The position numbers and the translations under genes were made by a program. A stretch of DNA of 64,000 nt, taken from sequence record OM339718.1; one strand, written 5' to 3'. Positions 12,693-37,392 of this stretch are shown here, one piece after another (positions within the stretch are counted from its first letter, which is position 1; every line of letters starts with the position of its first letter). Below the pieces are notes generated by a model. It was given only the letters and a program-made list of their open reading frames with translations, ran no database searches and was not told the origin of the DNA.

Positions 12693-12811
12693 TCTCGAAC
12701 GTAGTGAGACGGCGTAGCCGCCTGTTCGCTTCGCTCACACTCTTTCTAATTATAGATATTCTATATAAATACTTATAGAGATTTTATACTTTGATTGCAA
12801 GTGAAACTAAT
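12693..12811 (+). repeat. Structured intergenic element, copy 1 (119 bp)
   Basis: Reverse complement matches 37278-37392 with 3 substitutions and one 4-nt indel (hand alignment). GC-rich hairpin half plus AT-rich half containing TATAAATA. Confidence 0.95.
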
Positions 12812-12904
12812 TATTTTTGTATATAAAAGATACAAAAAAGGTGATCTCTCGATCACCTCAATATAAAAGTTAAAAATATTCGTAATGTCTGATACAATAC
12901 GAAA

Positions 12905-13126
12905 TCAAAAAACGTAAAATTTATCTCCATCTAGTTTAACGAATAAATCTTCTTGTACATCATGTACAACCACAATATCTCCCCTCTCCAAATATTCCTT
13001 TATCTTCTCGATCATCAAATGGTCATCTTCTTCAAGTCTTTTCCACCTTTCAATCAAATTATAAGAACCGAAATATCCAGTAAGAACAAAAGTATTTTCA
13101 TTAACTTCGATGAAATTGTATTCCAT
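12905..13126 (-). CDS. Hypothetical protein (73 aa), probably late
   Basis: ORF with RBS; minus-strand CTAAATA at 13165-13171 upstream. Confidence 0.7.
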   Translation of the reverse strand: MEYNFIEVNENTFVLTGYFGSYNLIERWKRLEEDDHLMIEKIKEYLERGDIVVVHDVQEDLFVKLDGDKFYVF

Positions 13127-13178
13127 TTAACACCCTTATTATATTGACCAAAATGGTCAATTAGTATTTAGGGATACA

Positions 13179-13202
13179 AAAAAGCCACCCCGTAGGATGG
13201 CT
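13179..13202 (-). terminator. Terminator of inh
   Basis: AGCCATCC-TACG-GGGTGGCTTTTT on the minus strand; identical to 33414-33437. Confidence 0.85.
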
Positions 13203-13207
13203 AGATA

Positions 13208-14005
13208 TTAGTAAATGGTATGGAAACGAGAATTACGACTCTCGCGCAATGTCACACTACCATTAATCTGGATGTAATAAAGAACTGTTTTCAGAAGTGC
13301 TTTATCCGGTTCGCGTTCATGAGTATCAATAATACTCTTCCAAGACGGTCCTTTCTCAAGGATCCAATCAAGAATCCAATACGGGCAATTTAGGTATTGG
13401 TTACCAACAGCACCAATCAGATTTACTTTCGGCTTGAAACCATAAGTCAAATCCGGTTCTTGGGTATCTTTAGTAGTTTCCAAATTCATTTTTTCTTTAA
13501 CGAACTTCTTTTCATCTTCAATTAATTCGTCGAGAGTTTTAAACCCAGAAGCATCAATATATTCTGGTTGTTTCGGTGGAGTGAATTCAATTTTAACATC
13601 GTTAGGAGTATTGATATTAACCACCCCATCATCAATTTTGATTGATTCAACCACACCAAGTTCAATAACCTCTTCTACATTGTCGAATTCATCATCGACT
13701 ACAACTGGTTCGACAAAAGGGGTTTTTTCTTTCGGTTCCGGTGCAAGGTCCAGTTTTTCATTCTCTTTGGCGTCCGCCATTTCAAGGAGTTTAACGATCA
13801 TATCGTCAACCGAAGTATTAGACTTGCTAATTTTAAAACCACATTCCTTAGCATATGCTTGAATTTTCGCTTTCGCTTCTGGTGCGGTATTAGCATCAAC
13901 AATTTCGTTGATTACCCCAAGGTCAAGTTCTTTTTGTTTTTTCACAGTAGACTTTTTTGGTTTAGTTTCTTTTTCTACTGGTTCTTCTACATAATTCAAT
14001 GCCAT
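13208..14005 (-). CDS. inh: Inhibitor of prohead protease Inh
   Basis: EAKAKIQAYAKECGFKISK; C-term PYWILDWI...YYIQINGSVTLRESRNSRF; minus-strand late motif at 14032-14038. Confidence 0.92.
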   Translation of the reverse strand: MALNYVEEPVEKETKPKKSTVKKQKELDLGVINEIVDANTAPEAKAKIQAYAKECGFKISKSNTSVDDMIVKLLEMADAKENEKLDLAPEPKEKTPFVEPVVVDDEFDNVEEVIELGVVESIKIDDGVVNINTPNDVKIEFTPPKQPEYIDASGFKTLDELIEDEKKFVKEKMNLETTKDTQEPDLTYGFKPKVNLIGAVGNQYLNCPYWILDWILEKGPSWKSIIDTHEREPDKALLKTVLYYIQINGSVTLRESRNSRFHTIY

Positions 14006-14017
14006 TTCGCATTCCTC

Positions 14018-14284
14018 TTAGTTTGTTAATGTATTTAGGGATTTGAGATATTTTACTGCCATCCCAATCTCGTTATACCCAAAGATCATGCCATATTTGG
14101 TCTTTTTATAGCCATGATCTTTTCGGATCTGAGTTCCTTTGAACTTAGAATGACCTCCGTGGTCTGAAACCCTCACCATATGCCCCTGTACGTCGATATA
14201 AGAGCTTGTGGATGAAGATACCAACCTACACTCGATCCCGCTATTGAATAGCTCTATCATCAATTCACGAGCTTTTGGGTTCAT
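14018..14284 (-). CDS. Hypothetical protein (88 aa)
   Basis: ORF translationally coupled to its neighbours; S.YI...VRVSDH motif. Confidence 0.7.
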   Translation of the reverse strand: MNPKARELMIELFNSGIECRLVSSSTSSYIDVQGHMVRVSDHGGHSKFKGTQIRKDHGYKKTKYGMIFGYNEIGMAVKYLKSLNTLTN

Positions 14285-15003
14285 TAATATAATTCTCCGG
14301 AATCACACATGATTTTAACAAGACCCAAATCACCCTTCACGGAATCCACCATATATTTGATCATCATGTTTGCAGCAACAATTTTAAAGCTATGCTCATT
14401 ATTAACATAGATATCAAATTGACCATATTTCTTGGCGTCGTTGATGAAGTATTTTGTACCGTGTACTTCTCCTACCATAATCCCACAACCTTTTAACCAG
14501 CTAGGGTAACCCTTCCCAACTTCTTTTGCAGAAAAGAATCCGTCCTTACCAGTCATTCCACCAGTACGTTGTACTTCATCGACATAATATTTAATGTCTT
14601 TCACTACGTTTTTATTTTCAACAACAGACACTTTCTTGATTTTTGGTTTTTCCGCACGGGTGAATACACTTTCATCATCTTGTTCGATGATTGGTTTAAG
14701 CATGGCCTCAAGTTCTTGGATCCGTGTTTCATGGAGTTGGTCAAGTTCTTCGATTGAAGATGCTTTATTACGACGTTTGACCCAATCTCGCTGACCTTCT
14801 ATGATCGCTGGGTTAATTTTTCGAACTTCTTTATAAACAGAATTCAGTTTCTCATCTGATTCACTCAGCCGTTCGTCTGCACAAATAGTTCGTTCTATTT
14901 TACTCGATGCTTTCTCACAGTCAAAAGATGCCGCATTAACCTGTACCGCACTAATAGCACACATAGCACCTAAGATAGCAAAACTAACAAACCGCTTTTT
15001 CAT
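14284..15003 (-). CDS. Secreted LprI/DUF1311 (lysozyme-inhibitor-like) domain protein
   Basis: Signal peptide MKKRFVSFAILGAMCAISAVQVNA, then ASFDCEKASSKIERTICADERLSESDEKLNSVY...QRDWVKRRN, the classic LprI pattern. Confidence 0.8.
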   Translation of the reverse strand: MKKRFVSFAILGAMCAISAVQVNAASFDCEKASSKIERTICADERLSESDEKLNSVYKEVRKINPAIIEGQRDWVKRRNKASSIEELDQLHETRIQELEAMLKPIIEQDDESVFTRAEKPKIKKVSVVENKNVVKDIKYYVDEVQRTGGMTGKDGFFSAKEVGKGYPSWLKGCGIMVGEVHGTKYFINDAKKYGQFDIYVNNEHSFKIVAANMMIKYMVDSVKGDLGLVKIMCDSGELY

Positions 15004-15024
15004 TTTTCATTCCTCAATTTAAAG

Positions 15025-15660
15025 TTATTTGGTTTCTTTTTTTGCTGCTTCTTCCATAGCAGCAATGATTACATTCAGGGGGGTCAGGTGTCCACAAACG
15101 TAGTAGAAGGCGCGAACAAACACAGTACCTTTGTGCCCACGAACAAGGTGCACGTTAGCGGTTACCATCATCCGACCAAACATCTCATCCAAACGAAGAC
15201 ACCGGTTGAACTGTTCACCCCGAAGTTCCATGATCTCCATGATGTTTTTCTTGATAACGGCTTCTTTCTCGCTAACTTTCGGTTCTGGTTGGTTGATTGG
15301 AGCGTTTTTAACTGTTTCAATCATAGCAACAACCTGTTCACCCATAGAAACCAATTCTTCACACAGAGCTTTATCCATCCAAGGCATTGCTTTTTCTGCT
15401 TTTACCAGATATTTGGCGAAAGTCGCGGTGTTTGGTTGTGCATAATAAAGGTCTACCGCTGCTTCGTGTTCCGGAAGATTCATATTACGCTGTTCGATGT
15501 GGATGGAGTCCAGATAGAAAGAAGAGAATTCGGCCCGCACCAGTTCCATCATTTTTGCGCATTCGTTCAGGGCGCGTTTCTGACCGGCCTTAGAAACAAA
15601 ACCGGCTTCAACCATACCAACTACGTTTTCCATAATTTCATTGAATTTTTCGTTGTTCAT
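15025..15660 (-). CDS. Hypothetical early protein (211 aa)
   Basis: ORF with AAGGA RBS downstream of a sigma70-like promoter. Confidence 0.8.
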   Translation of the reverse strand: MNNEKFNEIMENVVGMVEAGFVSKAGQKRALNECAKMMELVRAEFSSFYLDSIHIEQRNMNLPEHEAAVDLYYAQPNTATFAKYLVKAEKAMPWMDKALCEELVSMGEQVVAMIETVKNAPINQPEPKVSEKEAVIKKNIMEIMELRGEQFNRCLRLDEMFGRMMVTANVHLVRGHKGTVFVRAFYYVCGHLTPLNVIIAAMEEAAKKETK

Positions 15661-15696
15661 GGTTCGTTCCTTTTTGTCTCTTGTTTCGATATGGAT

Positions 15697-15726
15697 AAGA
15701 TATCAAAAAGGCTCACCCATTGGCAA
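15697..15726 (-). promoter_or_regulatory. Early sigma70-like promoter overlapping a hairpin
   Basis: TTGCCA-N18-TATCTT with TG extension; embedded in an AAAAAGGCT...AGCCTTTTT hairpin after rnlB. Confidence 0.55.
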
Positions 15727-15744
15727 GCCTTTTTTCATTTATTT

Positions 15745-16746
15745 TTAGAAATTTCCATCAAGGATATTCATCCAGTGTTCCCGAACAAGTTCCCCTGCTA
15801 GGTTGTTCACTGCTTTACCTACATCAGAAGGACGTTCTGCATCTCGTAGATTTTTGCTGGTATCCTTCGTGAAATCTTCAATTGCGTCTTTCGAGAGGTT
15901 ACCAGAAACCTTACCAAACTCTTTGGTGGTAGGGATCCCAATCTTACTGAGGACATTTTTAAGACGATTCACGTTGATATATTCAGCAATCTCATGAACC
16001 ATAGCAAGATCTGATTCACCCAGAGGCTCTTTTACCTTTACCGGTTTGTCAGATTTCCCTTTCTCTGTAAACTTGGAGTTTTTAGATTTGAAAATAGTCC
16101 GACCTTGACGGGTATAATGTGGGTCTACTGTCTTCGCAACAAACCCCTCCGCAATGTTATCAGTTCCTTCAACAAGATCGAATTTTCCTGCTTTGTTGCT
16201 TGGGATAACAACTGATTGGAAGTCGTTCGGGAGTTTTGTTACACCATCGAAATCCCCACGGTAGATAACAGGGGCATGTTTGAAGATCCCATCGATTGCA
16301 TCCATAACGAAATCGTGGGAGAGGTACATTCCAGTTTCACCAGAGAAAATGAAGATATCAAACACATAAAAGTCTTGATCTCCATACTCTACTTCTTTTT
16401 GAATCATTTTACCAGTAGTAAGATTACCGGCATATTCCCCGAAGATTGTAACTTGATCAACTTCTGGGTGTTTTTGTTTAACAAAGTTGTATACTTTTCG
16501 GGCATTATCATGATATTTCTTTACAATCAGGTCTGCTTCATAAAACTGGTCAAAATCACCAAGAAGGTCAGTTCGACGACCAGCCTGTACATGTTCATCA
16601 TTTACAGCAAGTTGAAAATTAGTACCATGAATCTTTTCCATTGCAACCCATTCAACACCCTTTGCAGTATATCCGGAAGTTGCAAAAGAGTCGATGACGT
16701 TTTGACGATAGTGGTTCTCAAGAGAGTTATATTTTACAAAAATCAT
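15745..16746 (-). CDS. rnlB: RNA ligase 2
   Basis: KYNSLENHY, motif I EKIHGTNF, IFGEYAG, AEGFVAK, IFKSKNSKFTE. Confidence 0.95.
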   Translation of the reverse strand: MIFVKYNSLENHYRQNVIDSFATSGYTAKGVEWVAMEKIHGTNFQLAVNDEHVQAGRRTDLLGDFDQFYEADLIVKKYHDNARKVYNFVKQKHPEVDQVTIFGEYAGNLTTGKMIQKEVEYGDQDFYVFDIFIFSGETGMYLSHDFVMDAIDGIFKHAPVIYRGDFDGVTKLPNDFQSVVIPSNKAGKFDLVEGTDNIAEGFVAKTVDPHYTRQGRTIFKSKNSKFTEKGKSDKPVKVKEPLGESDLAMVHEIAEYINVNRLKNVLSKIGIPTTKEFGKVSGNLSKDAIEDFTKDTSKNLRDAERPSDVGKAVNNLAGELVREHWMNILDGNF

Positions 16747-16761
16747 ATTATTTCCTTTTAT

Positions 16762-17085
16762 TTAGTCGTAAAAACCGGGTTTTTTGCTTTCAGCAATAGA
16801 TTTGCGAATTTGTGGCTCTTTGTCATAGCAGGTTTTGCAATATTTCCCAGCAAACACATTACCAACAAGTTGGTCTTCGTCTTGTGCAGTACCACAACAA
16901 GTACATACAAAATATCGAACACCTACGTTTACCAAACCACACTGTTCGTTAAGAAACTCAAGTGGTTTGTTTCGTGGGAGTGCTTCTGCATCTCGACCAC
17001 CAACCCCTTTTCGCCAATAAGACCCTGTGCAGTACTTCGAAAAATAAATGTTTGGGTATTTTACTTGCAATTCTTCGTTACACAT
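16762..17085 (-). CDS. Hypothetical protein with putative Zn finger
   Basis: CTCC...CKTC cysteine pairs. Confidence 0.7.
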   Translation of the reverse strand: MCNEELQVKYPNIYFSKYCTGSYWRKGVGGRDAEALPRNKPLEFLNEQCGLVNVGVRYFVCTCCGTAQDEDQLVGNVFAGKYCKTCYDKEPQIRKSIAESKKPGFYD

Positions 17086-17396
17086 TTTTGTTTCCTTTCT
17101 TTATAAAGGTTGTTAATAAAGTTAACAATTACCGGGTGGGGGACACAAATTTCTTTCTCGGTATAACTTACCCTAGCTTTGTGTTTTCCACCATAAAATT
17201 TACCAAACACATTTTTGGCGATCATACCTTTTTGGTGGTGTTGGTTCCTCATTACTGAATCTTGATCTGCGTTAGATCGCATCAGTTTTGATGGGGTTTT
17301 CTCTTTCCAAGAAAATATACCAGTTCCTAAAAACTTGTCAAGACCATATGCCAGACCAAGACAAACAACACCAACAGACAAACTTTCTACCAACAT
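17061..17396 (-). CDS. Hypothetical protein with N-terminal hydrophobic segment
   Basis: ORF with GAGG RBS; hydrophobic VGVVCLGLAYGL. Confidence 0.65.
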   Translation of the reverse strand: MLVESLSVGVVCLGLAYGLDKFLGTGIFSWKEKTPSKLMRSNADQDSVMRNQHHQKGMIAKNVFGKFYGGKHKARVSYTEKEICVPHPVIVNFINNLYKERKQKCVTKNCK

Positions 17397-17408
17397 AATT
17401 AATTCCTC

Positions 17409-17891
17409 TTAAAGGTCAGCGATATCAACAGCAACACCACCAGCAGCGATGAACGGGATGCGGCTCTTGGCACGGTCATCAACCAGACAAACGTTAGGAC
17501 GAGCAAACGCGGCTTTGTCTTCACTACACAGGGTATAATGGAAGTTTTCTAACAGTACCGCAGCGACGTCAGCAGGATATACATAAGAGACCCAAGCTTT
17601 CTTCTGGCGAACTACGTTCTCTGGGTTTTGACGACCGACGCTGGTTAAGATACTTACCTTGCGACCGCTACGAACCATCTCAATAACCAGAGAAACCCCT
17701 TTTTCCATCACCGGAAGATGACGATAGAAATTACCATTTGCCAGTTCTTCTTTGATAAGATTCTTATCTTCTTTGTTCAGACTGTCAAACTGTTCTGCCG
17801 CACCCTCACCAAAACGAGCATCGAATGCACGACACCAGTCAGCCATCACCCCATCCATATCAAAAAACAACTCGTAAGGATCATTCAGCAT
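17409..17891 (-). CDS. HAD-superfamily 5'(3')-nucleotidase-like protein
   Basis: FFDMDGVMADW (motif I), ILTS (II), K (III), LVDDRAKS (IV); start re-placed at MLNDP after a GAGGA RBS. Confidence 0.85.
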   Translation of the reverse strand: MLNDPYELFFDMDGVMADWCRAFDARFGEGAAEQFDSLNKEDKNLIKEELANGNFYRHLPVMEKGVSLVIEMVRSGRKVSILTSVGRQNPENVVRQKKAWVSYVYPADVAAVLLENFHYTLCSEDKAAFARPNVCLVDDRAKSRIPFIAAGGVAVDIADL

Positions 17892-17923
17892 TGTAATTCC
17901 TCTTTTGTGTCTCAACGAGATAG

Positions 17924-17953
17924 ATAATACTACACACAAGTTTCATGAGTCAA
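17924..17953 (-). promoter_or_regulatory. Early sigma70-like promoter
   Basis: TTGACT-N18-TATTAT with an A-rich upstream tract. Confidence 0.6.
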
Positions 17954-18012
17954 CCCCTTTTTAAAAGAAAAAAGGCCATGAGCAAATTGCATCATGACCC
18001 ACGTTAGACAAC

Positions 18013-18375
18013 TTAACCGTCCTCGCGTTTTGTTTGAGTTTTCTTCTCAACTCTGGCGTTTTCCATCTCACTGATCCGCTTCTCAAGTCTCTCCAATTCA
18101 ACTCGGTTCCCCCTATTAACCTCATCGATAAGATCCTTACTATAAAGCATTGCCCGCAGTTGAGCAGTTTCTACAGAATCCTTATTTGGGAGAGATTTAA
18201 TCTCCGTTCTTAGGTTATCTATAGATTTGTCCATGTGGGAAGTGATTTGCTCTTTAAAAGCTACTTGGCGGGAATCCGCTATAAATTCATTATATGAAAA
18301 TATAGAGGCCCAGATCGCCACAATAACGGTTAGGACGGGTAGGGTGTCTTTAAACAGCTTACTATTTATAAGCAT
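18013..18375 (-). CDS. Membrane-anchored coiled-coil protein (late)
   Basis: Single N-terminal TM segment TLPVLTVIVAIWASIFSY, helical C-term; minus-strand late motif at 18421-18427. Confidence 0.75.
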   Translation of the reverse strand: MLINSKLFKDTLPVLTVIVAIWASIFSYNEFIADSRQVAFKEQITSHMDKSIDNLRTEIKSLPNKDSVETAQLRAMLYSKDLIDEVNRGNRVELERLEKRISEMENARVEKKTQTKREDG

Positions 18376-18420
18376 TTTATTTTCTCCCTACGTCACGAGG
18401 GAATGGTATTCCCTCACATT

Positions 18421-18441
18421 TATTTAGTGTTGCCCTAAATA
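18421..18441. promoter_or_regulatory. Back-to-back late promoters
   Basis: TATTTAG (minus-strand CTAAATA) at 18421-18427 and CTAAATA at 18435-18441. Confidence 0.75.
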
Positions 18442-18475
18442 ATTATATATGTGAAAAATTTAAAGAGAGAACGAG

Positions 18476-19981
18476 ATGAAAGTATCAGTTAAATTCAACG
18501 ACTATAGTAATGCAATTATCGAGTGTGAACGTGACATCTTCATGGAGTTGAGAGAGTATTATTCATTTGAGACGGAAGGTGGTGCTAGATTTAATCCTAA
18601 GTTTAAATATAGCGGTTGGGATGGTCGGATCCGTCTCCTACAACCGGATGGAAAATTCCCTTATGGTCTGGTCAATAACCTTGAGAAATATTGCGCTAGA
18701 AACGAATACGAATTTGAAAAAGAAGAAGACTTTACTCCTATTAACCATTTCACATCTAGAGAAGAGTTTGATAAATGGTTGGCTGATATTGATATATATT
18801 CTGGGGGAAATAAGATTACCGCGCACTGGTATCAGGCTGATGCGGTTTATTACGCAATTCAGAATAACCGGGGTATCTTAAACCTTCCTACGTCTGCCGG
18901 TAAATCCCTAATAGCAGCTCTTATTTGTTACTGGTATATGACTAATTATGATGGGAAAATATTGCTAATCGTTCCAACAACCTCCCTTGTTACTCAGATG
19001 ATGGACGATTTCGCAGATTATCAGTTTATGAGACGGGAATTTTCTCATGGTATTATGGCTGGTAAAACAAAAGATCACCCAGCACCAGTATTTGTTAGTA
19101 CATGGCAAAGTGCATCGAAACAACCAGTTCATTGGTTCCGCCAATTTGGGGCTCTTTTGATTGATGAATGTCACAACGTAGGTAGTGAAATTAAGAATAT
19201 CATCACAAACCTCTCTGAGTGCCCGTTTAAATGGGGTATGAGTGGTTCTTTGAAAGATGGTAAATGTAATATTATGTCGTATGTTGGTTTGTTTGGGGAT
19301 GTATTCAAGCCAGTTAGTACTAAACAACTTATGGAAGAAGGTCAAGTAACAGATCTTAAAATAAACAACCTGTTCTTGCGGTATCCTAAACAAGATTGTG
19401 TATTAACTAAAGGAATAGAATATCAACAAGAGATTAAATATATCGAGGAACATACAAAGAGAAATGCTTTTGTGTGTCGTTTGGCTTTAAAATTAGCCAA
19501 AGAGAAGAAAGAGAATACCTTGATACTGTTTAGGCATAAGGAACATGGGAAGAAGCTTTATGAGGCCCTTAGCAAAAAACATGACAATGTATTCTTTGCT
19601 AATGGCGATACTAACGTAGAGGAACGGGATCAGCTTAAGAAAATTGCAGAGGGTAGCGACGGGATGATCATCGTTGCTTCTATTGGTATATTCTCAACCG
19701 GTATTTCTATCAAAAAGCTATTCCACGTTATTTTCGCGTCTCCATTTAAATCTAAGGTTACCACGTTACAGAGTATTGGTCGGGTTCTTCGAAAGCATGG
19801 AGAAAAGACTATCGCCACTCTATGGGATATTGTAGATAACCTATGTATTGAGACCAAAAATTCGAAACCGGGCTCGGTTAAATATGCACATAAAAATTAT
19901 GCGTACAAACATGCAATGCTTCGTATCGAAAGATATGCAAGTGAACAATTTGACTATCAAATTAAGGAAATAGAACTGTGA
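18476..19981 (+). CDS. uvsW: UvsW SF2 DNA helicase
   Basis: WDGRIRLL, PTSAGKS, LIDECH, QSIGRVLRKH. Confidence 0.97.
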   Translation: MKVSVKFNDYSNAIIECERDIFMELREYYSFETEGGARFNPKFKYSGWDGRIRLLQPDGKFPYGLVNNLEKYCARNEYEFEKEEDFTPINHFTSREEFDKWLADIDIYSGGNKITAHWYQADAVYYAIQNNRGILNLPTSAGKSLIAALICYWYMTNYDGKILLIVPTTSLVTQMMDDFADYQFMRREFSHGIMAGKTKDHPAPVFVSTWQSASKQPVHWFRQFGALLIDECHNVGSEIKNIITNLSECPFKWGMSGSLKDGKCNIMSYVGLFGDVFKPVSTKQLMEEGQVTDLKINNLFLRYPKQDCVLTKGIEYQQEIKYIEEHTKRNAFVCRLALKLAKEKKENTLILFRHKEHGKKLYEALSKKHDNVFFANGDTNVEERDQLKKIAEGSDGMIIVASIGIFSTGISIKKLFHVIFASPFKSKVTTLQSIGRVLRKHGEKTIATLWDIVDNLCIETKNSKPGSVKYAHKNYAYKHAMLRIERYASEQFDYQIKEIEL

Positions 19982-20259
19982 TATACTTTGCTGATTATCT
20001 TCGCCTTCAAGAAGAGGTAGAAGAAAAAAACACCGACGGTGGTGATGACAAGCCTGCTGTAAGTATCGAAAAGTTTTTGGGTAAAATTATGTCAGCAATG
20101 ACACCCAAAGGACTTGACGAACTAGAGCGTTATTATAAAAGTCGAATAAAATCCGTTGCTATTTCGGATACTGATGATATTCAGATCCGTGATGCAATCG
20201 ATGGTCGCCGCGAAGCCTTTAAACAAGAGGAAGGCGGTGAGGAAGTAGAAGACTTTTGA
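19978..20259 (+). CDS. uvsW.1: UvsW.1 homologue
   Basis: GLDELERYYKSR...SDTDDIQIRDAIDGRR; ATGA/GTGA coupling to uvsW. Confidence 0.88.
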   Translation: MIYFADYLRLQEEVEEKNTDGGDDKPAVSIEKFLGKIMSAMTPKGLDELERYYKSRIKSVAISDTDDIQIRDAIDGRREAFKQEEGGEEVEDF

Positions 20260-20264
20260 TTTTT

Positions 20265-20289
20265 AAAGCCCGCTTTATGCGGGCTTTTT
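20265..20289. terminator. Bidirectional terminator
   Basis: AAAGCCCGC-TTTAT-GCGGGCTTTTT between convergent genes. Confidence 0.85.
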
Positions 20290-20631
20290 GTTTTTAACGA
20301 ACAGGGGGTCATAACCAGTTGGTTTCATGAGGAATTTTTCATAATCTCGCAGAGTTTCATAGACCGACTGAGAAATGAAACCAACGCTACATTTTCCTTT
20401 TTGATATATGGCTCCACTAACCCGAACATAACGTGATGCGGAGAACATGTGGGCGAGTTCTGGGTCTACATCATAAAGGAGAGCCAAGATGCAGTTTTGG
20501 CGGTTCTTTCCCCGTGTGTGTTCTAGAACAAGACAATTAAGTTCTTTTCGAACTTGGTTAGTCAGTTCACGGATCTCCATCACTTGACCAAATTCACCAT
20601 TTTTCAAAACATCGTTATTGTGGTGATTCAT
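20275..20631 (-). CDS. Hypothetical protein (~118 aa)
   Basis: Start re-placed at MNHHNND after an AAGGAG RBS. Confidence 0.7.
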   Translation of the reverse strand: MNHHNNDVLKNGEFGQVMEIRELTNQVRKELNCLVLEHTRGKNRQNCILALLYDVDPELAHMFSASRYVRVSGAIYQKGKCSVGFISQSVYETLRDYEKFLMKPTGYDPLFVKNKKPA

Positions 20632-20642
20632 TTTATCTCTCC

Positions 20643-20870
20643 TTAGCGAACCATGGTTTTCATTTTCTTGACAACTACGGTTGTCTGGGTGGAAGGGCCA
20701 CGACGACCGGTACGGGTCAGGGTCATGGTCTCTTTTTTCTGAGAAGGGGTAACCTCTACAGAACGAGCCCAACGATTTGCAGAATCTTTACCGTTGTCGG
20801 TCATTTTACCGAAGGAAGCGACACGAGCGGCAGAACGAGTAGCGAAGAAAACTTGAGCGGTCATAGTCAT
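20643..20870 (-). CDS. Small basic hypothetical early protein
   Basis: AAAGGA RBS; sigma70-like promoter just upstream. Confidence 0.75.
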   Translation of the reverse strand: MTMTAQVFFATRSAARVASFGKMTDNGKDSANRWARSVEVTPSQKKETMTLTRTGRRGPSTQTTVVVKKMKTMVR

Positions 20871-20918
20871 GGTTCATTTCCTTTTTCAGAAGAGGGACAA
20901 CCCGTCCCGACATGAGTA

Positions 20919-20946
20919 ATATTACCAGAACTGGATTTTGGTGCAA
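20919..20946 (-). promoter_or_regulatory. Early sigma70-like promoter
   Basis: TTGCAC-N16-TAATAT with TG extension. Confidence 0.55.
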
Positions 20947-21006
20947 GCGATTTTTGAAAAATAAATGCAAAAAATCCCAAGTGATTGATTCACTTGGGAT
21001 TTTACT

Positions 21007-23528: not shown

Positions 23529-23537
23529 AAAAATCCC

Positions 23538-29654: not shown

Positions 29655-29666
29655 CTGTTAATCTCC

Positions 29667-29673
29667 CTAAATA
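29667..29673 (+). promoter_or_regulatory. Late promoter CTAAATA (gene 34)
   Basis: Motif in the rnh/34 divergent gap. Confidence 0.75.
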
Positions 29674-29712
29674 ATATATGATAACTAATTCTAACACAAG
29701 AGGATCTTGTAA

Positions 29713-32700
29713 ATGTCTTCAATTCCGTTTCGCGTTACCGACGGCTTAGATGCCGCCGGTCAAAAAATAGTTAACGTCGGTTATCCCGATATTAACTCAA
29801 AGATGGATGGTGTGAGTGTCGATTTCTTTGTACAAGAAAACACAATCCAACTATATGACGCAACTAGAACATACGACAAAAACTTTGCTGTTATCTATGA
29901 TAACCGAATATACCTAAGCCAAGTTGATATAACCTCACCCGAGGCATTCAACCCGGTAAAATGGAAACCAGTACGTACAGACCCAAGTTGGAAGCTGGTT
30001 ACGACTAATGCACCAGCGTTGACGAATCTTTCTGCTGGCGATCACATATTGGCACAGACCATAAGTAGCGACGTAACATTTACCTTACCAACTAATGCTC
30101 TTAATGGGGACGTTATTGTTATCAGAGATAATGGTTCTAATCTTCACGATTATACCATAGATGTTTCTGGTAATGGAAGAACTATTTCCGGTTTGGCTTC
30201 TTATAAGATCACAGCCAAAAATTCATCCAACTACTTCATTTTGAATGGTAGCGAATGGTTTGTTCAAACTGAATACGCTGGTGATGTAAACAAATCATTT
30301 ATCAGCAACAAGTCGTACCCAGCCGGTGGATATTATAAATCCATTGTTGGTGACCAGTTGATGAGAGAAACCAGATATACTGGTGGAATTAAGATCCAAC
30401 TACCAAAATACGCCAGAAACGGTGATACTATTACCACATATGATCTTGATGGTAATAACCCCGTAACAAAGACAACCGTAAACGTTCATCCGGGTAGTAG
30501 CCACAACATTATAGTTGAATACGGATCGACCCCAATGAAAACGGTCGTTTTTGATTCTACAGATTGGGGTATGTTTGTTTTTGATTCAAGTCTAAACGCT
30601 TGGAGAGTTTTCGACGCTGACAACCTTAGTCGTTGGAAAAGTGTCAAAACATCCACATACTTAGGTCAACCAAACGACCGACTAGTAGTTTATACTGAAA
30701 CTCCGTCGACTGTCAACATTACATTCCCTCGTGATGCGGCAAGAGGTGATAGCTTCTTTATAGACACACGATACATGAAAAGGGGTTCCACTTTAACTTT
30801 AAATATTGATGCATCCAGTACAAATGATTTCTTTGTACCAGATGGTAACACTCTAATGAACCCCCGGATCAGCGCATACCGCGATTTTCTTGCTAATATG
30901 GAATCAAAGACCGTAAAAACTCAGTCATTTGATATCCAAAACCGTGGGGAACAGTGGGAATTTGTGTACTTCACAAATGCTCTTGGTTCTGGTAAAGACG
31001 TTTGGTCTGTTGTTACTATGTCTGAGATTCCGTATCGAGTAGACCGAAATGTACCAGAATTTTATGGTATGGCTGCCATTGCATCTCAATCATCTGTAAA
31101 CAAGAACAAAGAAGAGATCACGACAGGTCAAAACCCAGATTGTGAGGATTTTGTTACCGCAGAAACATTGGCTAACAAAACAGCAAGTACCGTCCGGCGT
31201 GGTATCACCCGATATGCATCTAATAGTGAATCAAAGGCAGTTAGTGGAAACCTATCCGATGAAGCATGGTCAGGGGTGGCAATAAGCCCGTTCCTGTTGA
31301 ACGACCGTCTATCTACAACAACAATGCGTGGTTTGTTGAAGGTAGCGACACAGAGTCAAGCAAACGCACAATCCGGTTCCGGTGAAAACTGGGCTCAGGT
31401 TGCGGTCACACCATCTACCCTTAACGGTAGAGTCGCCACCGAGTCTATGACTGGTTTATCTGCTCTTGTCTCAGCTAATGGAACTAAGCCTACCACAAGA
31501 ACAACTCCGGGTACAGGTGTTTATGATTATAACGATCATAGCAAGGTAATCACTCCGAAAACCCTATTTGAGAAAAACGCAACTGAGTTTTCACAAGGTA
31601 TGGTGTACATTGCCAACCAAGGGGAGGTTAACACAGGTACTGCCGACACCGCAACCGGTGCGCTAGTAGTAACCGCAACTACCCTAGAAGGACGTCAGGC
31701 TACAGCATCACTAACCGGGTTGTCAAGGGCTGCAACATCAATAGAAGTACTTAGTAACACACCACCGGCTGGTGACAACGTACACGTTAGCGCAAAAGGA
31801 CTTGTAAGTAGAACCGCAACCGAAACCCGTTGGGGTTTGTCCGAAACCGCAACACAAGCGGAAGTAGATGCGGGAACATTACATGACAAATGGTTTGTTA
31901 CTCCAAAAACATTTGGTAACTGGTTAGCTAGAGAAAGACTGACTGTGTTCGATACATCGGGACTTAGAACAGTTGGTAATATTTGGGAAGGTCAATCTTT
32001 TAATATCGTTATTCCTACTGAGTCACAACGAGGTACTGCTAGAATTGCAACTCAGAATGAAGTAAACGATATGACCGGAACCGCAAATGACGAAATTATC
32101 GTAACTCCAAAGAAACTGAGTGCAAGACTAGCGACTACAACCCAAACGGGTTTGTCTCAAATTGCAACTCAATCTGAGGTTGATACCGGTACTAACAACA
32201 CAAAATACCTAACCCCGTTAACCGCTCTAACCAGCTCTAGAAATAGTGCAGGTTATAGAATGACTGATACTAGATATGGTGTTGGTATTACTGCAATATT
32301 GTCAAACAACAACTCTGCTAACTCCGTGTTTGAAGGCAATGATATTCTTGGTTCTACAAGAGCATTAACAGGCTACGCACATGGAGATGTATTGGTTTCC
32401 CCGAGAGGTTTGAATACAGCATTATCTAATTTCCTACCCCTTAAAGCTGTGGCTGTAAGTGCCAGTGCAATGGAGGTTGGTGGAAACCGTATACCTTCAA
32501 CTGATTGGGTTCGTCGTACTATCGCACAAACAATAACCGGCGAAATGACGTTTACCGCAAATCCGTCTATTGAGAAGATTAGACCTTATTTCTATCTCAA
32601 CGAAACATCGACTACATCTCATGTATCCATGATCCAGTGGAAACGTCAGGGTAGCAATGCGTTTTTAGATCTTGGTGTAAACACGATTGATGGTCCATTA

Positions 32701-33405
32701 GTCCTTAACGCAATGGACGAAAACAGTAGATACTATAGGGTCTTTACTGTTGAACGGGATGGTAATGCAATATTCACCAACCAAGTTCAAAACGGCGGAC
32801 AGAACCCAACGTCTGGGAACCACCTTGTTCGTTTTGCTTATGCAGAAGAAAGATATGTTCGTGGACCGGGTAACTTCGCAGAAACTATTACCGGTAACAA
32901 GACTTTTGTTAATACTACATATTTTAAGAACAGCGGTGTCCAAAATATATGGATGGGTAATACTTCTAAGAGTGGGATAACCATAAACGCAAACGAGAGT
33001 TTGAATATTGGTTCTCTTGGTGGATTACAAATTCGCCCTAATGGTCTATCTTCGCCATCAAATACATCATCGTTTGAATCGAATGGTGACCTAAAGGTAA
33101 ATGCTCAAGTTAAGATAGGAAGTGCATTACCGATTGATCCTGATGATGCAATTCGTAAAGACTATCTGGATTCCGTGATAGACGATATGAATACTACATC
33201 TGGTTCTCGTGTGTTTAAGGGTGGTGATACCATGACAGGCGAGCTTATCATCAATTCGGTGAAAGCGCTAACCGTAAATGGTGATTCTAACCTGAATGGA
33301 ACAACAACCGTAAATAAACTTAGGATAGCAGTTGGTAACGGAGAATTCTTAGAAATAAGAGCAAACCCAACTACCAAGTCTGTTGACTTTGTTTGGATCA
33401 GTTAA
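29713..33405 (+). CDS. 34: Long tail fibre proximal subunit gp34
   Basis: FRVTDGLDAAGQKIVNV, QENTIQLYDATR, repeated ATQ.EV...TP..L..R.AT fibre repeats. Confidence 0.96.
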   Translation: MSSIPFRVTDGLDAAGQKIVNVGYPDINSKMDGVSVDFFVQENTIQLYDATRTYDKNFAVIYDNRIYLSQVDITSPEAFNPVKWKPVRTDPSWKLVTTNAPALTNLSAGDHILAQTISSDVTFTLPTNALNGDVIVIRDNGSNLHDYTIDVSGNGRTISGLASYKITAKNSSNYFILNGSEWFVQTEYAGDVNKSFISNKSYPAGGYYKSIVGDQLMRETRYTGGIKIQLPKYARNGDTITTYDLDGNNPVTKTTVNVHPGSSHNIIVEYGSTPMKTVVFDSTDWGMFVFDSSLNAWRVFDADNLSRWKSVKTSTYLGQPNDRLVVYTETPSTVNITFPRDAARGDSFFIDTRYMKRGSTLTLNIDASSTNDFFVPDGNTLMNPRISAYRDFLANMESKTVKTQSFDIQNRGEQWEFVYFTNALGSGKDVWSVVTMSEIPYRVDRNVPEFYGMAAIASQSSVNKNKEEITTGQNPDCEDFVTAETLANKTASTVRRGITRYASNSESKAVSGNLSDEAWSGVAISPFLLNDRLSTTTMRGLLKVATQSQANAQSGSGENWAQVAVTPSTLNGRVATESMTGLSALVSANGTKPTTRTTPGTGVYDYNDHSKVITPKTLFEKNATEFSQGMVYIANQGEVNTGTADTATGALVVTATTLEGRQATASLTGLSRAATSIEVLSNTPPAGDNVHVSAKGLVSRTATETRWGLSETATQAEVDAGTLHDKWFVTPKTFGNWLARERLTVFDTSGLRTVGNIWEGQSFNIVIPTESQRGTARIATQNEVNDMTGTANDEIIVTPKKLSARLATTTQTGLSQIATQSEVDTGTNNTKYLTPLTALTSSRNSAGYRMTDTRYGVGITAILSNNNSANSVFEGNDILGSTRALTGYAHGDVLVSPRGLNTALSNFLPLKAVAVSASAMEVGGNRIPSTDWVRRTIAQTITGEMTFTANPSIEKIRPYFYLNETSTTSHVSMIQWKRQGSNAFLDLGVNTIDGPLVLNAMDENSRYYRVFTVERDGNAIFTNQVQNGGQNPTSGNHLVRFAYAEERYVRGPGNFAETITGNKTFVNTTYFKNSGVQNIWMGNTSKSGITINANESLNIGSLGGLQIRPNGLSSPSNTSSFESNGDLKVNAQVKIGSALPIDPDDAIRKDYLDSVIDDMNTTSGSRVFKGGDTMTGELIINSVKALTVNGDSNLNGTTTVNKLRIAVGNGEFLEIRANPTTKSVDFVWIS

Positions 33406-33413
33406 TAAAACAA

Positions 33414-33437
33414 AGCCATCCTACGGGGTGGCTTTTT
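33414..33437 (+). terminator. Terminator-like hairpin between 34 and 35
   Basis: AGCCATCC-TACG-GGGTGGCTTTTT; same 24-mer as 13179-13202. Confidence 0.75.
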
Positions 33438-33452
33438 CATAGGGGCAATATA

Positions 33453-36400
33453 ATGGCCGAACTTGTTATATCAAGTATTTCAAATGGCGGTATCAAGTCT
33501 AATAAATTATCAGAGAACTTTTCTGGATTAAATCAGATCAAGATATCCCCAAAAACAGACACTCAAAATAAAATTGCGTCTATCAACGGATACTCAATTA
33601 ACCCAGTAGAAATAGACGGTCTTGAGTGTATCAGTATAAACAACGATCTCAGTGTTGGAATCCGAGACGTTTTTAATTTTAAGAATTCAACTGACGTCAA
33701 TCGGTTTGAAGGTTGGATCAATTCCATTGGTAGTGGGATTATTCTAATGATCTCTCATGGTGAAAACATAACAACTACATCAATCAACAACTATTTCAAA
33801 AAAATTGGATGTATTGGTTGGTCAAATCATTGGAATCCATCAACAAACACACAGAACACCCGATACGCTGCAATATATGACTGTGGTCTGAAAAAGATTA
33901 TGGTAGAACAATTTGGGGTTAGTTCGCTTATAAATGTTTCTCTAGAAGTTGTTTTTGATACGTTCAATGATATTGGTGTTGTAGGATATGGAAACAATAT
34001 CATCTCAGACCAACAGGAATATATAAACGAAAAATCAAAAACAGCGGAATTCAAAACATTCATGAATAAAACCCTTATATCTGATATGGTGGTTAACTGG
34101 GGTGAAACCCTTAGATTCAGCCTTGAGACGTATAGGGACGACCTAGCGGCGGCGGCTGGTGAATCAATAAGACTATATTATATTGGATATAACGGAAATA
34201 CTTCCGTGACTTCCGGATATGTCAGTTCTCTTGATACGTCTGGGCAGTGGGATTTTGTTTATAACGATTTTGTTGTTCCAACCACAATAGATAGATTAAC
34301 CGTATATGCTACGTCATGGCCCGTTAAATCCCAATATATTGGTACTACTGGGGTTCGCACGGTATCCGTATTCAGGAAAAAACCGGTAGTTGTTAAATCC
34401 GGAACTGCTTCTTTCGGTCAATGGGGTTTTATTACAGAAGACGCGATAGAAACCAGTGGGGACATCGCAGGTAGAATTAAAGAGAAAAATATTACCGCAT
34501 TTGAATATGGTAATTTAGAAAATGTCAGTTTTCCACACTTCACATATAATGACGGAAAATATATAAAAGACCCTAAATTGGTAGTTGGTAAGAAATTTTC
34601 TTATTTTATATCAATGGTTTATACAGATACCAACGTACCTGTAAACCGGGTTGGATCTGGATCCGATGATACTATTTTCATTGGTATGACAACAAAGACT
34701 CATCCTACTGGTATGGGGCATATTGTTACTTATGCTGGAAAAACGATAACCACGAATGAAATAATTTCTTGTAATAAAGAATATTTGTATAAGTTGGAAA
34801 TTGATAGCCCAAGTATGAAGTTTTATGTCAACGGGGTTTTAGTTGGAAGTACAACAATAGAAGACTTAGCAAGACGAGAGTTTGAAGAAATTCGAGTTGG
34901 TTCTGAAATGAGTGGGTATATCATATCTTCGGAGTATGAAGATTATGAGCTACCAAATAATTCAAGATATTATGAATATCCACAATCAGAAAAACTACCT
35001 TTTATTAAAGGGTCTTCTCCTGCTAGTGGTGTTTATTATTCCGGTTCCAATATCACACCTGATGCGGGTGGTGGTTGGCTATATTGCGGTATCGGAAGTC
35101 AACTAATCCCAGCAGGAATGAAAACCGGTTCTAAGGCTTATGTTACCATAGTTGAAAATAACGGTGCTACGTTGAATACCGGTATTGAAATGAACAAAAG
35201 ATATGAGGTTATTGCGGAAAGACAACAAACACAGGGTTTACAGCCTAGACATATGTTCTTCTTTAGGAAAGACGGTGTAAACTGGATAACCGCTGGTAAC
35301 ATGACTAACCTTAAATTTGATGTTGATTGTTACACAGACCCAGACATAATTAGTGAGAAACCTACTATATCATGGGTTAAAAACAACAAATACACCTTCA
35401 ATTTCAATGGGGGTACGATGGTTGATATTCCACCGGTATATTTGATAAATAAATCTGGTTATGCCACATTCAATTTCATTTTTGGAAACGTAGATTTCAA
35501 TATGTATCTATTGGATGGACGAAGTTCTAACGCTCAAGAACTTCAAGGTGGATGGTTATATATATCTAGACAGAAGGCACTTGCTTTTTCTTCCACATAT
35601 ATGTCTATTGTTCAATTGGACGGAAAGCCATATAACGGTGAAGCAATTACTCCTAATATTCCACATAGTATTGTTGTTGAACTGAAAAAAGGTTCGGTAA
35701 TCAGAAATATTGGTGGTAGATATTCAAAAACTGAATGTTTGAATGGTCAAATATGGGACATTAATATTGTCGGGGATAATGATTCCCGAGCATATATAAA
35801 CACACAGGAATCTAGATTTAACTACTACTCAACGGGTATAGAAGATCAGAATAATGCTGGTGTATTGGTATATGACACTGTTGATCTGTCTAAATGGAAA
35901 ATGTCGGATGAACTAAACTCACCGATTAGTGTGGTTAGCAACAACCGATTTAAATTTGTGAAAGATGTATCAGAGGGTGGGATGACATATCATCTTAACT
36001 TGCCAGCAAAGGGAAGATACAGAATAGAATATGATATCGATTGTCCAAGACCATTATTTCTTAAAGATGTATATGGGACAACAGTTGGTGTCGGTCAGAT
36101 TCTAAAATCTTTACCATACGGTAGATTTAAAGGTGTTATTTATCATAACCACACAGAATCGTCCCATGATTCGGGTCTGTATATCTGTGTACCAAATGCA
36201 AGAAACGGGGATGTGGTAACTGTTAGAAGCCTAGTAGCATATTCCACAAAAACGGATGCTATCGGCTATAACGTAGCGGGGGCTTCGTATTTCTTTAATA
36301 CATTTGAAGAACCTCAAATGATCGGGAATACAATGAGTTCTTGGGTTCCAAACCTATCAAATAACAACTACCTAAATATATTACCGGCATGGTTACCACA

Positions 36401-37232
36401 AAAAGATTCATGGAGACTGAGATTCGTTGGTGATAATTTCTCTAGTGGTTATTACCTTGACAATACGGATAAGACTCATGGTATCTTCATCACTGTATCG
36501 TCAACCACTTTGCAGTTCGTTGTCAAAAACCGGGGTTCTAATATAAGCAATATTACCATTAACCATGGTATGACTGTTGGTAAGGAATTTGATATTGACA
36601 TTCAATACAATTTTCCAAACCTATATATCAGAACAAACTCTGTTATTAGCAATTCAACATATAATCATGTTGATGGGATATCTTCTGATATGTGTATGAG
36701 GAATTCATCCTGTATCATCAAACAAATTGATATGATAGAATCAACAAATACCGTATCTAGCTCACGAGTTTATAACTTAGTTGACAATGGATATATAATC
36801 CCAGAAAACGATGTTATTCAAAATACTCTGACATTCAGAAAGAAGCTACGCTCTGTTCTTCTTAAAACTGGTGGTGGGGTTGTTGGATGGGATTCTGTGT
36901 TGGGTGATGTAGCAGGGAACGGTAGGTTGAAGGATGATATCTATATATACAATAATAGGATATCTAAAATTGTGAGTGGTGGTTCAACTCATAGTATGAT
37001 CATTGAGTTTGAAGGAAAAGTGACACCATATTCTCAGCTAGAAGTAACCTTAAAAATTGGTGGTATATTGCAAACTAAATATGCATATATAGGAACTGAT
37101 AACTATGTTATATCGAAAGATATTGATGTAGATAACTGGTTGGAGCCATCTAGTCAATATAAAGTTATTGACATAAGACCAATTGGTCTGGTAGGTGTAA
37201 AACTACAGACAGCTAATTGGAAAAAGGTATAA
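33453..37232 (+). CDS. 35: gp35 (tail fibre hinge)-like protein with a ~900-aa C-terminal extension
   Basis: First ~370 aa resemble T4 gp35 (LEVVFDTFNDIG, WDFVYNDFVVP, ASFGQWGF); the rest is beta-rich and lectin/LamG-like. Start re-placed at MAELV. Confidence 0.75.
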   Translation: MAELVISSISNGGIKSNKLSENFSGLNQIKISPKTDTQNKIASINGYSINPVEIDGLECISINNDLSVGIRDVFNFKNSTDVNRFEGWINSIGSGIILMISHGENITTTSINNYFKKIGCIGWSNHWNPSTNTQNTRYAAIYDCGLKKIMVEQFGVSSLINVSLEVVFDTFNDIGVVGYGNNIISDQQEYINEKSKTAEFKTFMNKTLISDMVVNWGETLRFSLETYRDDLAAAAGESIRLYYIGYNGNTSVTSGYVSSLDTSGQWDFVYNDFVVPTTIDRLTVYATSWPVKSQYIGTTGVRTVSVFRKKPVVVKSGTASFGQWGFITEDAIETSGDIAGRIKEKNITAFEYGNLENVSFPHFTYNDGKYIKDPKLVVGKKFSYFISMVYTDTNVPVNRVGSGSDDTIFIGMTTKTHPTGMGHIVTYAGKTITTNEIISCNKEYLYKLEIDSPSMKFYVNGVLVGSTTIEDLARREFEEIRVGSEMSGYIISSEYEDYELPNNSRYYEYPQSEKLPFIKGSSPASGVYYSGSNITPDAGGGWLYCGIGSQLIPAGMKTGSKAYVTIVENNGATLNTGIEMNKRYEVIAERQQTQGLQPRHMFFFRKDGVNWITAGNMTNLKFDVDCYTDPDIISEKPTISWVKNNKYTFNFNGGTMVDIPPVYLINKSGYATFNFIFGNVDFNMYLLDGRSSNAQELQGGWLYISRQKALAFSSTYMSIVQLDGKPYNGEAITPNIPHSIVVELKKGSVIRNIGGRYSKTECLNGQIWDINIVGDNDSRAYINTQESRFNYYSTGIEDQNNAGVLVYDTVDLSKWKMSDELNSPISVVSNNRFKFVKDVSEGGMTYHLNLPAKGRYRIEYDIDCPRPLFLKDVYGTTVGVGQILKSLPYGRFKGVIYHNHTESSHDSGLYICVPNARNGDVVTVRSLVAYSTKTDAIGYNVAGASYFFNTFEEPQMIGNTMSSWVPNLSNNNYLNILPAWLPQKDSWRLRFVGDNFSSGYYLDNTDKTHGIFITVSSTTLQFVVKNRGSNISNITINHGMTVGKEFDIDIQYNFPNLYIRTNSVISNSTYNHVDGISSDMCMRNSSCIIKQIDMIESTNTVSSSRVYNLVDNGYIIPENDVIQNTLTFRKKLRSVLLKTGGGVVGWDSVLGDVAGNGRLKDDIYIYNNRISKIVSGGSTHSMIIEFEGKVTPYSQLEVTLKIGGILQTKYAYIGTDNYVISKDIDVDNWLEPSSQYKVIDIRPIGLVGVKLQTANWKKV

Positions 37233-37236
37233 AATG

Positions 37237-37266
37237 AAAAGCCTACCCTGTTTTGGGTAGGCTTTT
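37237..37266. terminator. Bidirectional terminator after gene 35
   Basis: AAAAGCCTACCC-TGTTTT-GGGTAGGCTTTT. Confidence 0.88.
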
Positions 37267-37277
37267 CGTGTCTATGG

Positions 37278-37392
37278 ATTAGTTTCAAGTGCAATCAAAG
37301 TATAAAATCTCTATAAGTATTTATATAGAAGATCTATAATTAGAAAGTGAGCGAAGCGAACAGGCGGCTACGCCGTCTCACTACGTTCGAGA
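37278..37392 (-). repeat. Structured intergenic element, copy 2 (115 bp, inverted)
   Basis: Reverse complement of 12693-12811 with 3 substitutions and a 4-nt deletion. Confidence 0.95.

Follow-up and report, generated by a model that had tools for sequence, protein, structure and literature searches.

Bacteriophage T4 has at least five replication origins, and the minimal origin at oriF and oriG is a segment of approximately 100 bp in which a promoter is combined with an A+T-rich unwinding element (PMC3016281). No motif is common to the origins of T4, which has made it impossible to predict origins in relatives of this phage. Promoter/stem-loop (PeSL) cassettes have been described in phi1/RB49, PST/T4 and nt-1/KVP40 (PMC4122927), and the Aeh1 lineage has the protein AsiA, reportedly lacks MotA, and has no known middle-promoter consensus (PMC1524935). 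Here we describe an intergenic element that is present in six copies in the genome of Aeromonas phage P19 (OM339718.1; 228,236 bp; Straboviridae, Emmerichvirinae, Ceceduovirus). The window is the whole stretch of 64,000 nucleotides that was analysed; it corresponds to positions 1-64000 of this record, with identical coordinates, and copies were sought across the whole record. On indirect evidence from sequence comparisons and a stability scan, we tentatively put forward these conserved, cis-acting DNA elements as candidate origin-like DNA-unwinding modules, a reading to which we give somewhat less than an even chance. An earlier note on the window had proposed a duplicated replication origin, a mobile cassette or an inversion site. 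Of these three readings the origin is the best supported, but as a conserved family of six rather than as a duplication.

Two copies lie within the window. Positions 12688-12811 on the plus strand align with the reverse complement of 37278-37397 at 93.5% identity over 124 columns, with four substitutions and one 4-nt indel (ACTC). This bears out the inverted, near-identical pair of the earlier note, including its three substitutions and single 4-nt indel inside 12693-12811 (the extra substitution is at 12692) and the intergenic position of both copies. The two matching copies are real, but they belong to a six-copy family, with four further copies outside the window. The six copies and their loci are as follows.

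12688-12811, plus strand: copy c1, in A orientation (the GC module precedes the AT module), 3' of gene 24 and near inh
37278-37397, minus strand: copy c2, in A orientation on this strand, with tail-fibre gene 35 on one side and a small gene, a SegE-like gene and nrdA on the other
78205-78326, plus strand: copy c3, between alc and vs.1
125696-125799, minus strand: copy c6, among early genes whose products have no assigned function
167881-167980, minus strand: copy c5, upstream of the ndd cluster
198700-198815, minus strand: copy c4, between genes 54 and 26

No other repeat within the window is comparable, the next best being 25-39 nt long and 73-85% identical, and a profile search of the P19 genome returned no weaker copies. 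All 21 records of related Aeromonas phages have the element, at several places in each genome. A collection of bacterial and archaeal genomes representing 185,579 species contains no true match, which rules out a host-derived repeat. True metagenome matches are limited to phage-65-like contigs and one distant lake-phage contig, and the remainder are chance matches. A literature search found no publication that describes the element. It is a conserved and apparently undescribed family of non-coding sequences in Aeromonas T4-like phages.

Each copy is bipartite. A variable GC-rich hairpin module of about 45 nt abuts an AT-rich, quasi-palindromic module of about 65 nt in all copies. The parts that fall in the window are listed below.

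12694-12740, plus strand: GC module of c1, with CGAAC/GTTCG, GTGAG/CTCAC, the inner hairpin CGGC-GTA-GCCG at 12710-12720 and the mini-hairpin GCTTCGC at 12728-12734
12743-12809, plus strand: AT module of c1, with its core at 12752-12789 and the outer arm TTTGATTGCAAGTGAAACTA at 12790-12809
12785-12790, plus strand, and 12749-12754, minus strand: outward-facing -10-like hexamers of c1, TATACT and TATAAT, respectively
37347-37391, minus strand: GC module of c2
37280-37346, minus strand: AT module of c2, with its core at 37301-37338

The smaller features named in the earlier note are all found in c1: CGAAC at 12696-12700 with GTTCG at 12724-12728, GTGAG at 12704-12708 with CTCAC at 12734-12738, an inner hairpin at 12710-12722, GCTTCGC (complement GCGAAGC) at 12728-12734, and TATAAATA at 12764-12771. 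Its remark on the GCGAAGC mini-hairpin also holds, since relatives of P19 keep this hairpin either through a C:G to T:A change (GTGAAAC in phage 65) or through a change of loop (GCGTAGC in Aswh_1). The sequence of the GC module otherwise varies between copies and genomes. An inner GC hairpin is present in every copy, with changing stems (CGGC/GCCG, CGCC/GGCG, CCC/GGG, CGGGC/GCCCG or CGCG/CGCG) and free loops. Both hairpins are thus retained through compensatory changes. The consensus fold of the GC module as a whole is weak, with a covariation term of -0.81 kcal/mol. A stable single-strand structure was considered and rejected, because the P19 copies fold at the level of shuffled sequences as DNA and slightly better as RNA, and only the inner hairpin and the mini-hairpin are clearly maintained.

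The AT module of P19 has the sequence TTTCTAATTATAGATCTTCTATATAAATACTTATAGAGATTTTATACTTTGATTGCAAGTGAAACTA. In phage 65 the inner arms of the palindrome are near-perfect (AATTATAAAGTT(T)CTAT ... ATAGAACTTTATAATT), and copy c2 of Aswh_1 has both of the outer arms (TTTGATTnCAnnTGAnAC), inverted relative to each other. The arms co-vary between genera. Readings of these arms as sites for IHF, CRP or DnaA, which were judged by eye only, were set aside because the consensus positions vary across copies.

The two modules are not locked together in a single arrangement. The GC module is reversed relative to the AT module in copies c1 and c5 of Aswh_1 and in copy c5 of P19, and at the c4 locus of phage 65 a GC centre lies between two AT modules that are inverted relative to each other. 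Neither terminal inverted repeats nor a target-site duplication is present: AGATCTCGAAC... at one end and ...GAAACTAAT at the other do not form an inverted repeat, and the flanks are not duplicated. Together with the syntenic loci, this rules out mobility of the type found in miniature inverted-repeat transposable elements.

The AT cores stand out in a nearest-neighbour stability scan of the whole P19 genome that used windows of 30-60 bp. With windows of 30, 40 and 50 bp, the six least stable regions genome-wide are exactly the six AT cores; with 60-bp windows, AT cores hold the top four ranks and all six are within the top 13. The AT module of c1 contains the least stable 30- and 40-bp windows of the entire genome, and that of c2 is among the six least stable regions. 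It is TA-step density, not plain AT content, that singles out these cores. The diverged cores of phage 65 take seven of the top eight least stable places in the 65.5 kb scanned. A related core in Ah1/Aeh1-type phages (see below) is the least stable window at three of three loci. In addition, the six P19 copies are more evenly spaced than random points. Gaps between them range from 24.6 to 47.5 kb on the circle (P = 0.006 for the minimum gap, 0.0009 for the maximum gap and 0.001 for the coefficient of variation).

Both the positions and the sequence of the element are conserved. Phage 65 and Aswh_1 (Ishigurovirus) have it at all six loci in orientations that match those of P19, avDM6 has it at the c2 and c3 loci, and other relatives are colinear with P19 at the element loci. 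AT modules have identities of 0.90-0.94 within a genome. Between genomes the values are 0.80 (P19 and phage 65) and 0.91 (P19 and Aswh_1), and AT modules from the same locus are no closer to each other than those from different loci. The flanking DNA, which is largely coding, is about 71% identical. High identity of the AT module irrespective of locus, set against flanks at this level, indicates concerted evolution under selection. The flanking DNA is plastic right up to the element borders. At c3, for example, the DNA to the left has been replaced between P19 and CC2 and 217 nt have been inserted to the right, both flush with the borders of an element that is 96% identical.

A related element is found in Ah1/Aeh1-type phages, where it occupies the same gap between gp54 and gp26 and occurs at 8-11 places per genome. 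The features in common are the GGCGTAGCCGC hairpin, the 13-mer CTCACTACGTTCG, the palindrome AAATCTCT...GATCT and the arm GAAATCAA. In Ah1 (MG250483.1) this gap holds two tandem units of about 180 nt, and a perfect GTTTAC-N17-TATAAT promoter follows the second unit. Long inverted repeats with AATCAAT/ATTGATT flank c6 and c5 in P19 (125608-125696 and 167996-168062, with arms of 20 and 16 bp). These repeats are conserved in Aswh_1, their motif echoes the outer arm TTTGATT, and they may be extra binding sites.

All copies are located in gaps between transcription units, at distances of 18 to more than 100 nt from the gene. It is the AT end that is turned toward the downstream gene in c3 and c4, and the GC end in c1, c2, c5 and c6. 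A terminator-like hairpin is found on one side of the element at c1, c2 and c4. The transcription signals that border the two copies in the window are as follows.

12656-12684, minus strand: sigma-70-like promoter TTTATA-N17-TAAAAT with a TG before it, immediately beyond the GC end of c1; it serves gene 12089-12649
12838-12859, minus strand: intrinsic terminator of gene 12905-13126, adjoining the AT end of c1
37236-37267, match in the minus-strand scan, T-rich on both sides: terminator hairpin belonging to the tail-fibre gene, directly beside the AT end of c2 and kept in relatives
37400-37428, plus strand: T4-type early promoter (G)TTTACA-N17-TACTAT, immediately beyond the GC end of c2 and directed away from the element

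The promoters outside the GC ends of c1 and c2, conserved and of the sigma-70 type, thus both direct transcription away from the element. The -35 sequence of the one beside c2 is conserved in phage 65, avDM6 and Aswh_1. Consensus scans for a sigma-70-type promoter (-35/-10) found none inside the six copies on either strand. Early promoters of P19 have the form TTGAC(T/A)-N17-TAnAAT, and comparison with these TTGAC-type promoters, together with the scans, rules out an ordinary early promoter within the element.

The sequence TATAAATA is the late-promoter motif of T4, and the earlier note's mention of it implied a late promoter of this type. That reading is wrong for P19. Most late genes examined in this phage are preceded by CCTAAATA(A/C), for example upstream of 4041, 4611, 8583, 10399 and 29713. 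This motif resembles the one reported for Aeh1 and has 34 matches in the genome. Of the 20 matches to TATAAATA in the P19 genome, six are inside the elements, where the motif would point antisense in four of the six copies. The copies of phage 65 have TATTAATA in its place. A late-promoter-like CCTAAATA is also found at 12667-12674 (plus strand), directed into c1 on a strand without a downstream gene, and CTAAATA is kept at this place in phage 65 and Aswh_1. It could represent a late transcript that enters the element or a constraint imposed by the early promoter on the opposite strand.

The variable orientation of the elements and the terminators and promoters that neighbour them speak against a promoter that acts in one direction, against a terminator and against an element that works as RNA, and they favour a function of duplex DNA. 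The flipping of the GC module relative to the AT module, combined with the varying orientation relative to genes, likewise points to a DNA function that is independent of strand.

Other hairpins in P19 can be mentioned here. The terminator hairpin AGCCATCCTACGGGGTGGCT(TTTT) recurs after unrelated genes, at 13183-13202 (minus strand), at 33399-33437, and at 198828-198849 of the P19 record directly beside c4. Hairpins of the form GGGGCGAAAGCCCC at 40814-40850 (after nrdA) and 59074-59110 (after a recA-like gene) contain the stable mini-hairpin motif GCGAAAGC, and are probably ordinary terminators.

An origin-like unwinding module would account for the most meltable DNA of the genome, its palindromy, the adjoining hairpin module, the promoters nearby, the six dispersed and evenly spaced copies at fixed loci, and an orientation that is independent of neighbouring genes. 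In such a scheme, negative supercoiling, derived partly from the adjacent promoters, would open or extrude the AT palindrome, and the GC module would then fold into hairpins on the exposed strands. A phage factor might recognise the conserved arms (TTTGATTnCAnnTGAAAC), after which helicase/primase machinery of the T4 type, or an RNA primer, could start replication. The six evenly spaced copies would act as do the five or more dispersed origins of T4, with the difference that they share one sequence. A single shared and co-evolving sequence implies a specific binding factor.

Several considerations weigh against this interpretation. An unwinding element needs low stability rather than sequence conservation, so a binding protein would have to be assumed in addition. 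T4 origins have no common motif, whereas the copies described here share one palindromic sequence and a GC hairpin module. At oriF and oriG a MotA-dependent middle promoter fires into the unwinding element, whereas at c1 and c2 the clear promoters are directed outward, and there is no MotA box (TGCTT) at the right distance (-30) from either -10-like hexamer. As single strands, the P19 copies have unremarkable folding energies (z = -0.4 to -2.4). The tests of spacing and instability were picked after inspection of the data, and because the six copies are homologous they amount to about one independent observation per lineage. Extreme instability could also be a by-product of a TA-rich sequence to which a protein or polymerase binds. 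With regard to MotA itself, two P19 open reading frames (ORFs) between gene 52 and asiA were considered as candidates and rejected, as they lack MotA domains.

A broader version of the origin interpretation can be stated, though as a whole it is quite unlikely to be right. Aeromonas T4-like phages of at least four genera (the Ceceduovirus, Ishigurovirus, Ah1 and Aeh1 lineages are meant) may use sequence-defined palindromic origin modules, with about six evenly spaced copies that each combine the most unstable duplex with a hairpin module. The arms would co-evolve with the phage factor that reads these modules, which might be a nuclease or an initiator; the SegE-like protein is one possibility. 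If this were true, a dedicated initiator-and-origin system would operate in a phage family that is thought to start replication by ordinary promoters and recombination alone.

The proposal of the earlier note that the inverted pair could invert the intervening 24.5 kb is not borne out by the relatives. The junctions at c1 and c2 are colinear with P19 in every relative for which both were examined. Of 21 records, 20 run uninterrupted across the c2 junction, and only the scrambled assembly of AP1 is broken there. Phage 65 also keeps the 24-kb interval between c1 and c2. Inversion isomers between isolates, as in Hin/Gin-type systems, were not found for this pair. The deposited annotation lists no recombinase or invertase gene, no dedicated search for one having been run.

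Two deposited records contain joins within elements. In AS-sw (MF498775.1) the right side of c1 is joined to the right side of c6 inside the AT module, and the adjoining 2.6 kb compared is a 98.5% identical inverted duplicate of the normal c1 locus of the same record. A natural inversion is not accepted here, since a record with both a normal c1 locus and its inverted duplicate is compatible with a mis-join. In AP1 (MT713136.1, 122.5-123.9 kb) the left side of c4 is joined to the right side of c2, again inside the AT module. This 254-kb assembly looks scrambled, and the 10 places at which it has the element are not taken as spread because many of its scrambled junctions are element-free. Both joins may be assembly errors at a repeat rather than natural recombinants. 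The AS-szw record begins 26 nt from c6.

The main competing explanation, unlikely but not far-fetched, is that the element is a bidirectional, activator-dependent promoter cassette of a 'middle-mode-like' kind that has no -35 sequence. A dimeric phage factor would bind its palindromic core at about -28, between two outward -10 hexamers, and the missing -35 would suit RNA polymerase modified by AsiA. P19 encodes AsiA, and the Aeh1 lineage, as noted above, has it without MotA or a known middle-promoter consensus. For transcription in one direction the GC module would be a stabilizing 5' hairpin, and for the opposite direction it would serve as a terminator or insulator. The hexamers that flank the core vary at tolerated positions only: one reads TATAnT throughout the 28 copies listed, and its counterpart on the opposite strand is TATAAT or TACAGT. 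At each locus, one of the two directions runs into the start of a gene. The GC module of c6 ends 18 nt before the next start codon and hence must lie in the 5' UTR (untranslated region) of that gene. Such a cassette would be functionally akin to PeSL, a likeness in keeping with the exchange of DNA flush with the element borders, and it could also be the promoter part of an origin; the two readings are compatible because T4 origins are themselves promoters plus unwinding elements. However, -10-like hexamers are common in AT-rich DNA, and the scans recover no complete promoter from any copy. A promoter requires about 12 bp of easily melted DNA, not a palindrome of 40-50 bp. One direction would yield antisense RNA at every locus, while a strictly unidirectional promoter is contradicted at two or four of the six loci. 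Moreover, six copies with no weaker relatives in the genome are far too few for a general promoter class. The mobile PeSL-type cassette of the earlier note is not supported as a member of that class: no -35/-10 promoter is inside, the orientation relative to genes varies, and the six copies sit at fixed syntenic loci in two genera.

We give the remaining alternatives a lower chance. It is improbable that the copies are a functionless repeat family, selfish or neutral and loosely comparable to bacterial REP/BIME mosaics, that frequent gene conversion keeps alike in a highly recombinogenic T4-type genome. Concerted evolution without a locus-specific signal between genomes is what this explanation predicts, and the mosaic architecture (flipped GC modules, the doubled and inverted AT module at c4 of phage 65, the tandem units of Ah1) and the chimeric joins in two assemblies agree with it. 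Gene conversion alone, though, cannot slow the divergence of a family consensus between lineages, and the AT module is 80-91% identical where the flanks are at about 71%. Adjacent non-coding DNA is replaced outright while this module is conserved, six loci and orientations are retained in two genera, extreme instability is kept despite sequence change, there are no terminal inverted repeats or target-site duplications, and bacterial genomes lack the element. An RNA-level element, either a processing site of the RNase III type or a hairpin that stabilizes or terminates mRNA, has little chance of being correct. It would fit the intergenic position, the capacity of both the AT palindrome and the GC module to form RNA hairpins (some predicted pairs are G-U) and the T-run that follows the GC module in one direction in phage 65. 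Against it, different RNAs would be made at different loci because orientation to transcription differs, and c1, c2 and c4 adjoin separate terminator-like hairpins. The fold z-scores and covariation term given above are weak. Searches of the window for Rfam covariance models gave no match at the gathering score and only chance-level matches around c1 at E ≤ 10, and the ARAGORN scan for tRNA and tmRNA gave nothing; a known RNA family or tRNA-like element is ruled out by these results. There is very little chance that the element is a dedicated recombination or cleavage site, whether a crossover for programmed inversion or a nuclease target whose breaks start recombination-dependent replication. 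The inverted arrangement of c1 and c2, the tendency of an AT-rich palindrome to extrude a cruciform, and the joins exactly within elements in AS-sw and AP1 would suit such a site. The nuclease could be the SegE-like enzyme, whose gene is fixed beside c2 in 21 of 21 relatives, or a junction-resolving enzyme that acts on the extruded cruciform. Yet inversion between c1 and c2 is absent from all sequenced relatives compared, phage 65 included, and no invertase is annotated, in a search that was not exhaustive. The AP1 assembly has many scrambled sites without an element, the duplication in AS-sw is typical of a mis-join, and adjacency is all that links the nuclease to the element.

Several genes near the elements deserve comment in their own right. 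The SegE-like gene beside c2 (37578-38480, minus strand) encodes a GIY-YIG homing endonuclease (Pfam PF19835, E = 3e-30), and it is at the same locus in 21 of 21 related records. Such fixation is unusual for a selfish endonuclease and suggests domestication. Between this gene and c2 is an ORF of 39 amino acids (37462-37581, plus strand) that is unannotated in P19 and whose protein is conserved in phage 65 (65p047), avDM6 and Aswh_1, with the common residues ...IPLVP...NPQLI..W.EW.F.... The conserved T4-type early promoter at 37400-37428 is upstream of it, and the ORF probably encodes a real small hydrophobic protein. The neighbours of c1, genes 11707-12051 and 12089-12649 (both minus strand), encode an RyR-domain protein (E = 1e-10) and a protein with a weak, sub-threshold DprA/Smf match (DNA_processg_A, E = 1e-3), respectively. 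Beside c3, an unannotated ORF of 66 amino acids lies between alc and the element (P19 78024-78224) and has its stop codon within the GC module. The corresponding slot in CC2 holds a different ORF of 63 amino acids. Elsewhere in the window, the DNA polymerase (55173-57865) and a UvsW-like helicase (18476-20259) are each deposited as two adjacent or overlapping ORFs, which may be split genes or frameshifts.

The element bears on how replication starts in T4-type phages outside the T-even group and on what takes the place of MotA-dependent middle promoters where a lineage has retained AsiA. As a conserved six-copy sequence, it supplies concrete candidate origin or control sites for a large clade of Aeromonas phages, including candidates for aquaculture therapy. 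It also offers a signature for such sites, namely the least stable DNA of a genome in palindromic and evenly spaced copies, and the co-evolving arms could lead to the protein that recognises them. There is a practical aspect as well. In at least two of the genome assemblies deposited, breaks or mis-joins fall at these repeats, which either confuse assemblers or mark real recombinants.

The element can be compared with four described systems. Bacterial REP/BIME sequences are GC-rich imperfect palindromes that occur in either orientation and together with other short intergenic motifs, features that recall those described here. REPs reside mostly inside transcripts, at 3' ends, and are present in hundreds of copies, while the phage element has six copies, is absent from bacterial genomes, and has an AT-rich sequence as its dominant conserved part. 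The herpes simplex origins oriS and oriL are also similar in that they are near-identical intergenic copies with an AT-rich centre and inverted recognition arms. In that case the initiator protein is known, and neither the virus nor the sequence is related.

PeSL cassettes also combine a stem-loop with an AT-rich promoter-like segment in intergenic regions of T4-type phages, and DNA is swapped at their borders (PMC4122927). The stem-loop directly adjoins the AT segment in the element too, and neighbouring DNA has been exchanged at its borders as well, by the replacement and 217-nt indel at c3 between P19 and CC2. PeSLs, however, have a recognisable early promoter (-35/N17/-10) followed by a Shine-Dalgarno sequence and a start codon; they are always directed toward a gene, and they are numerous and clustered in hyperplastic regions, in association with indels and gene swaps. 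The P19 element has no -35 and no internal early promoter, takes no fixed orientation that ends in a Shine-Dalgarno sequence and start codon, and is confined to six copies at fixed loci. There is also a resemblance in size and layout to T4 oriF (uvsY) and oriG (34), which are likewise about 100-120 bp long, dispersed among several places, and intergenic or near late-gene clusters (PMC3016281). As in those origins, an A+T-rich segment of very low helical stability, the property that defines their unwinding elements, is found in the P19 element together with adjoining promoter elements.

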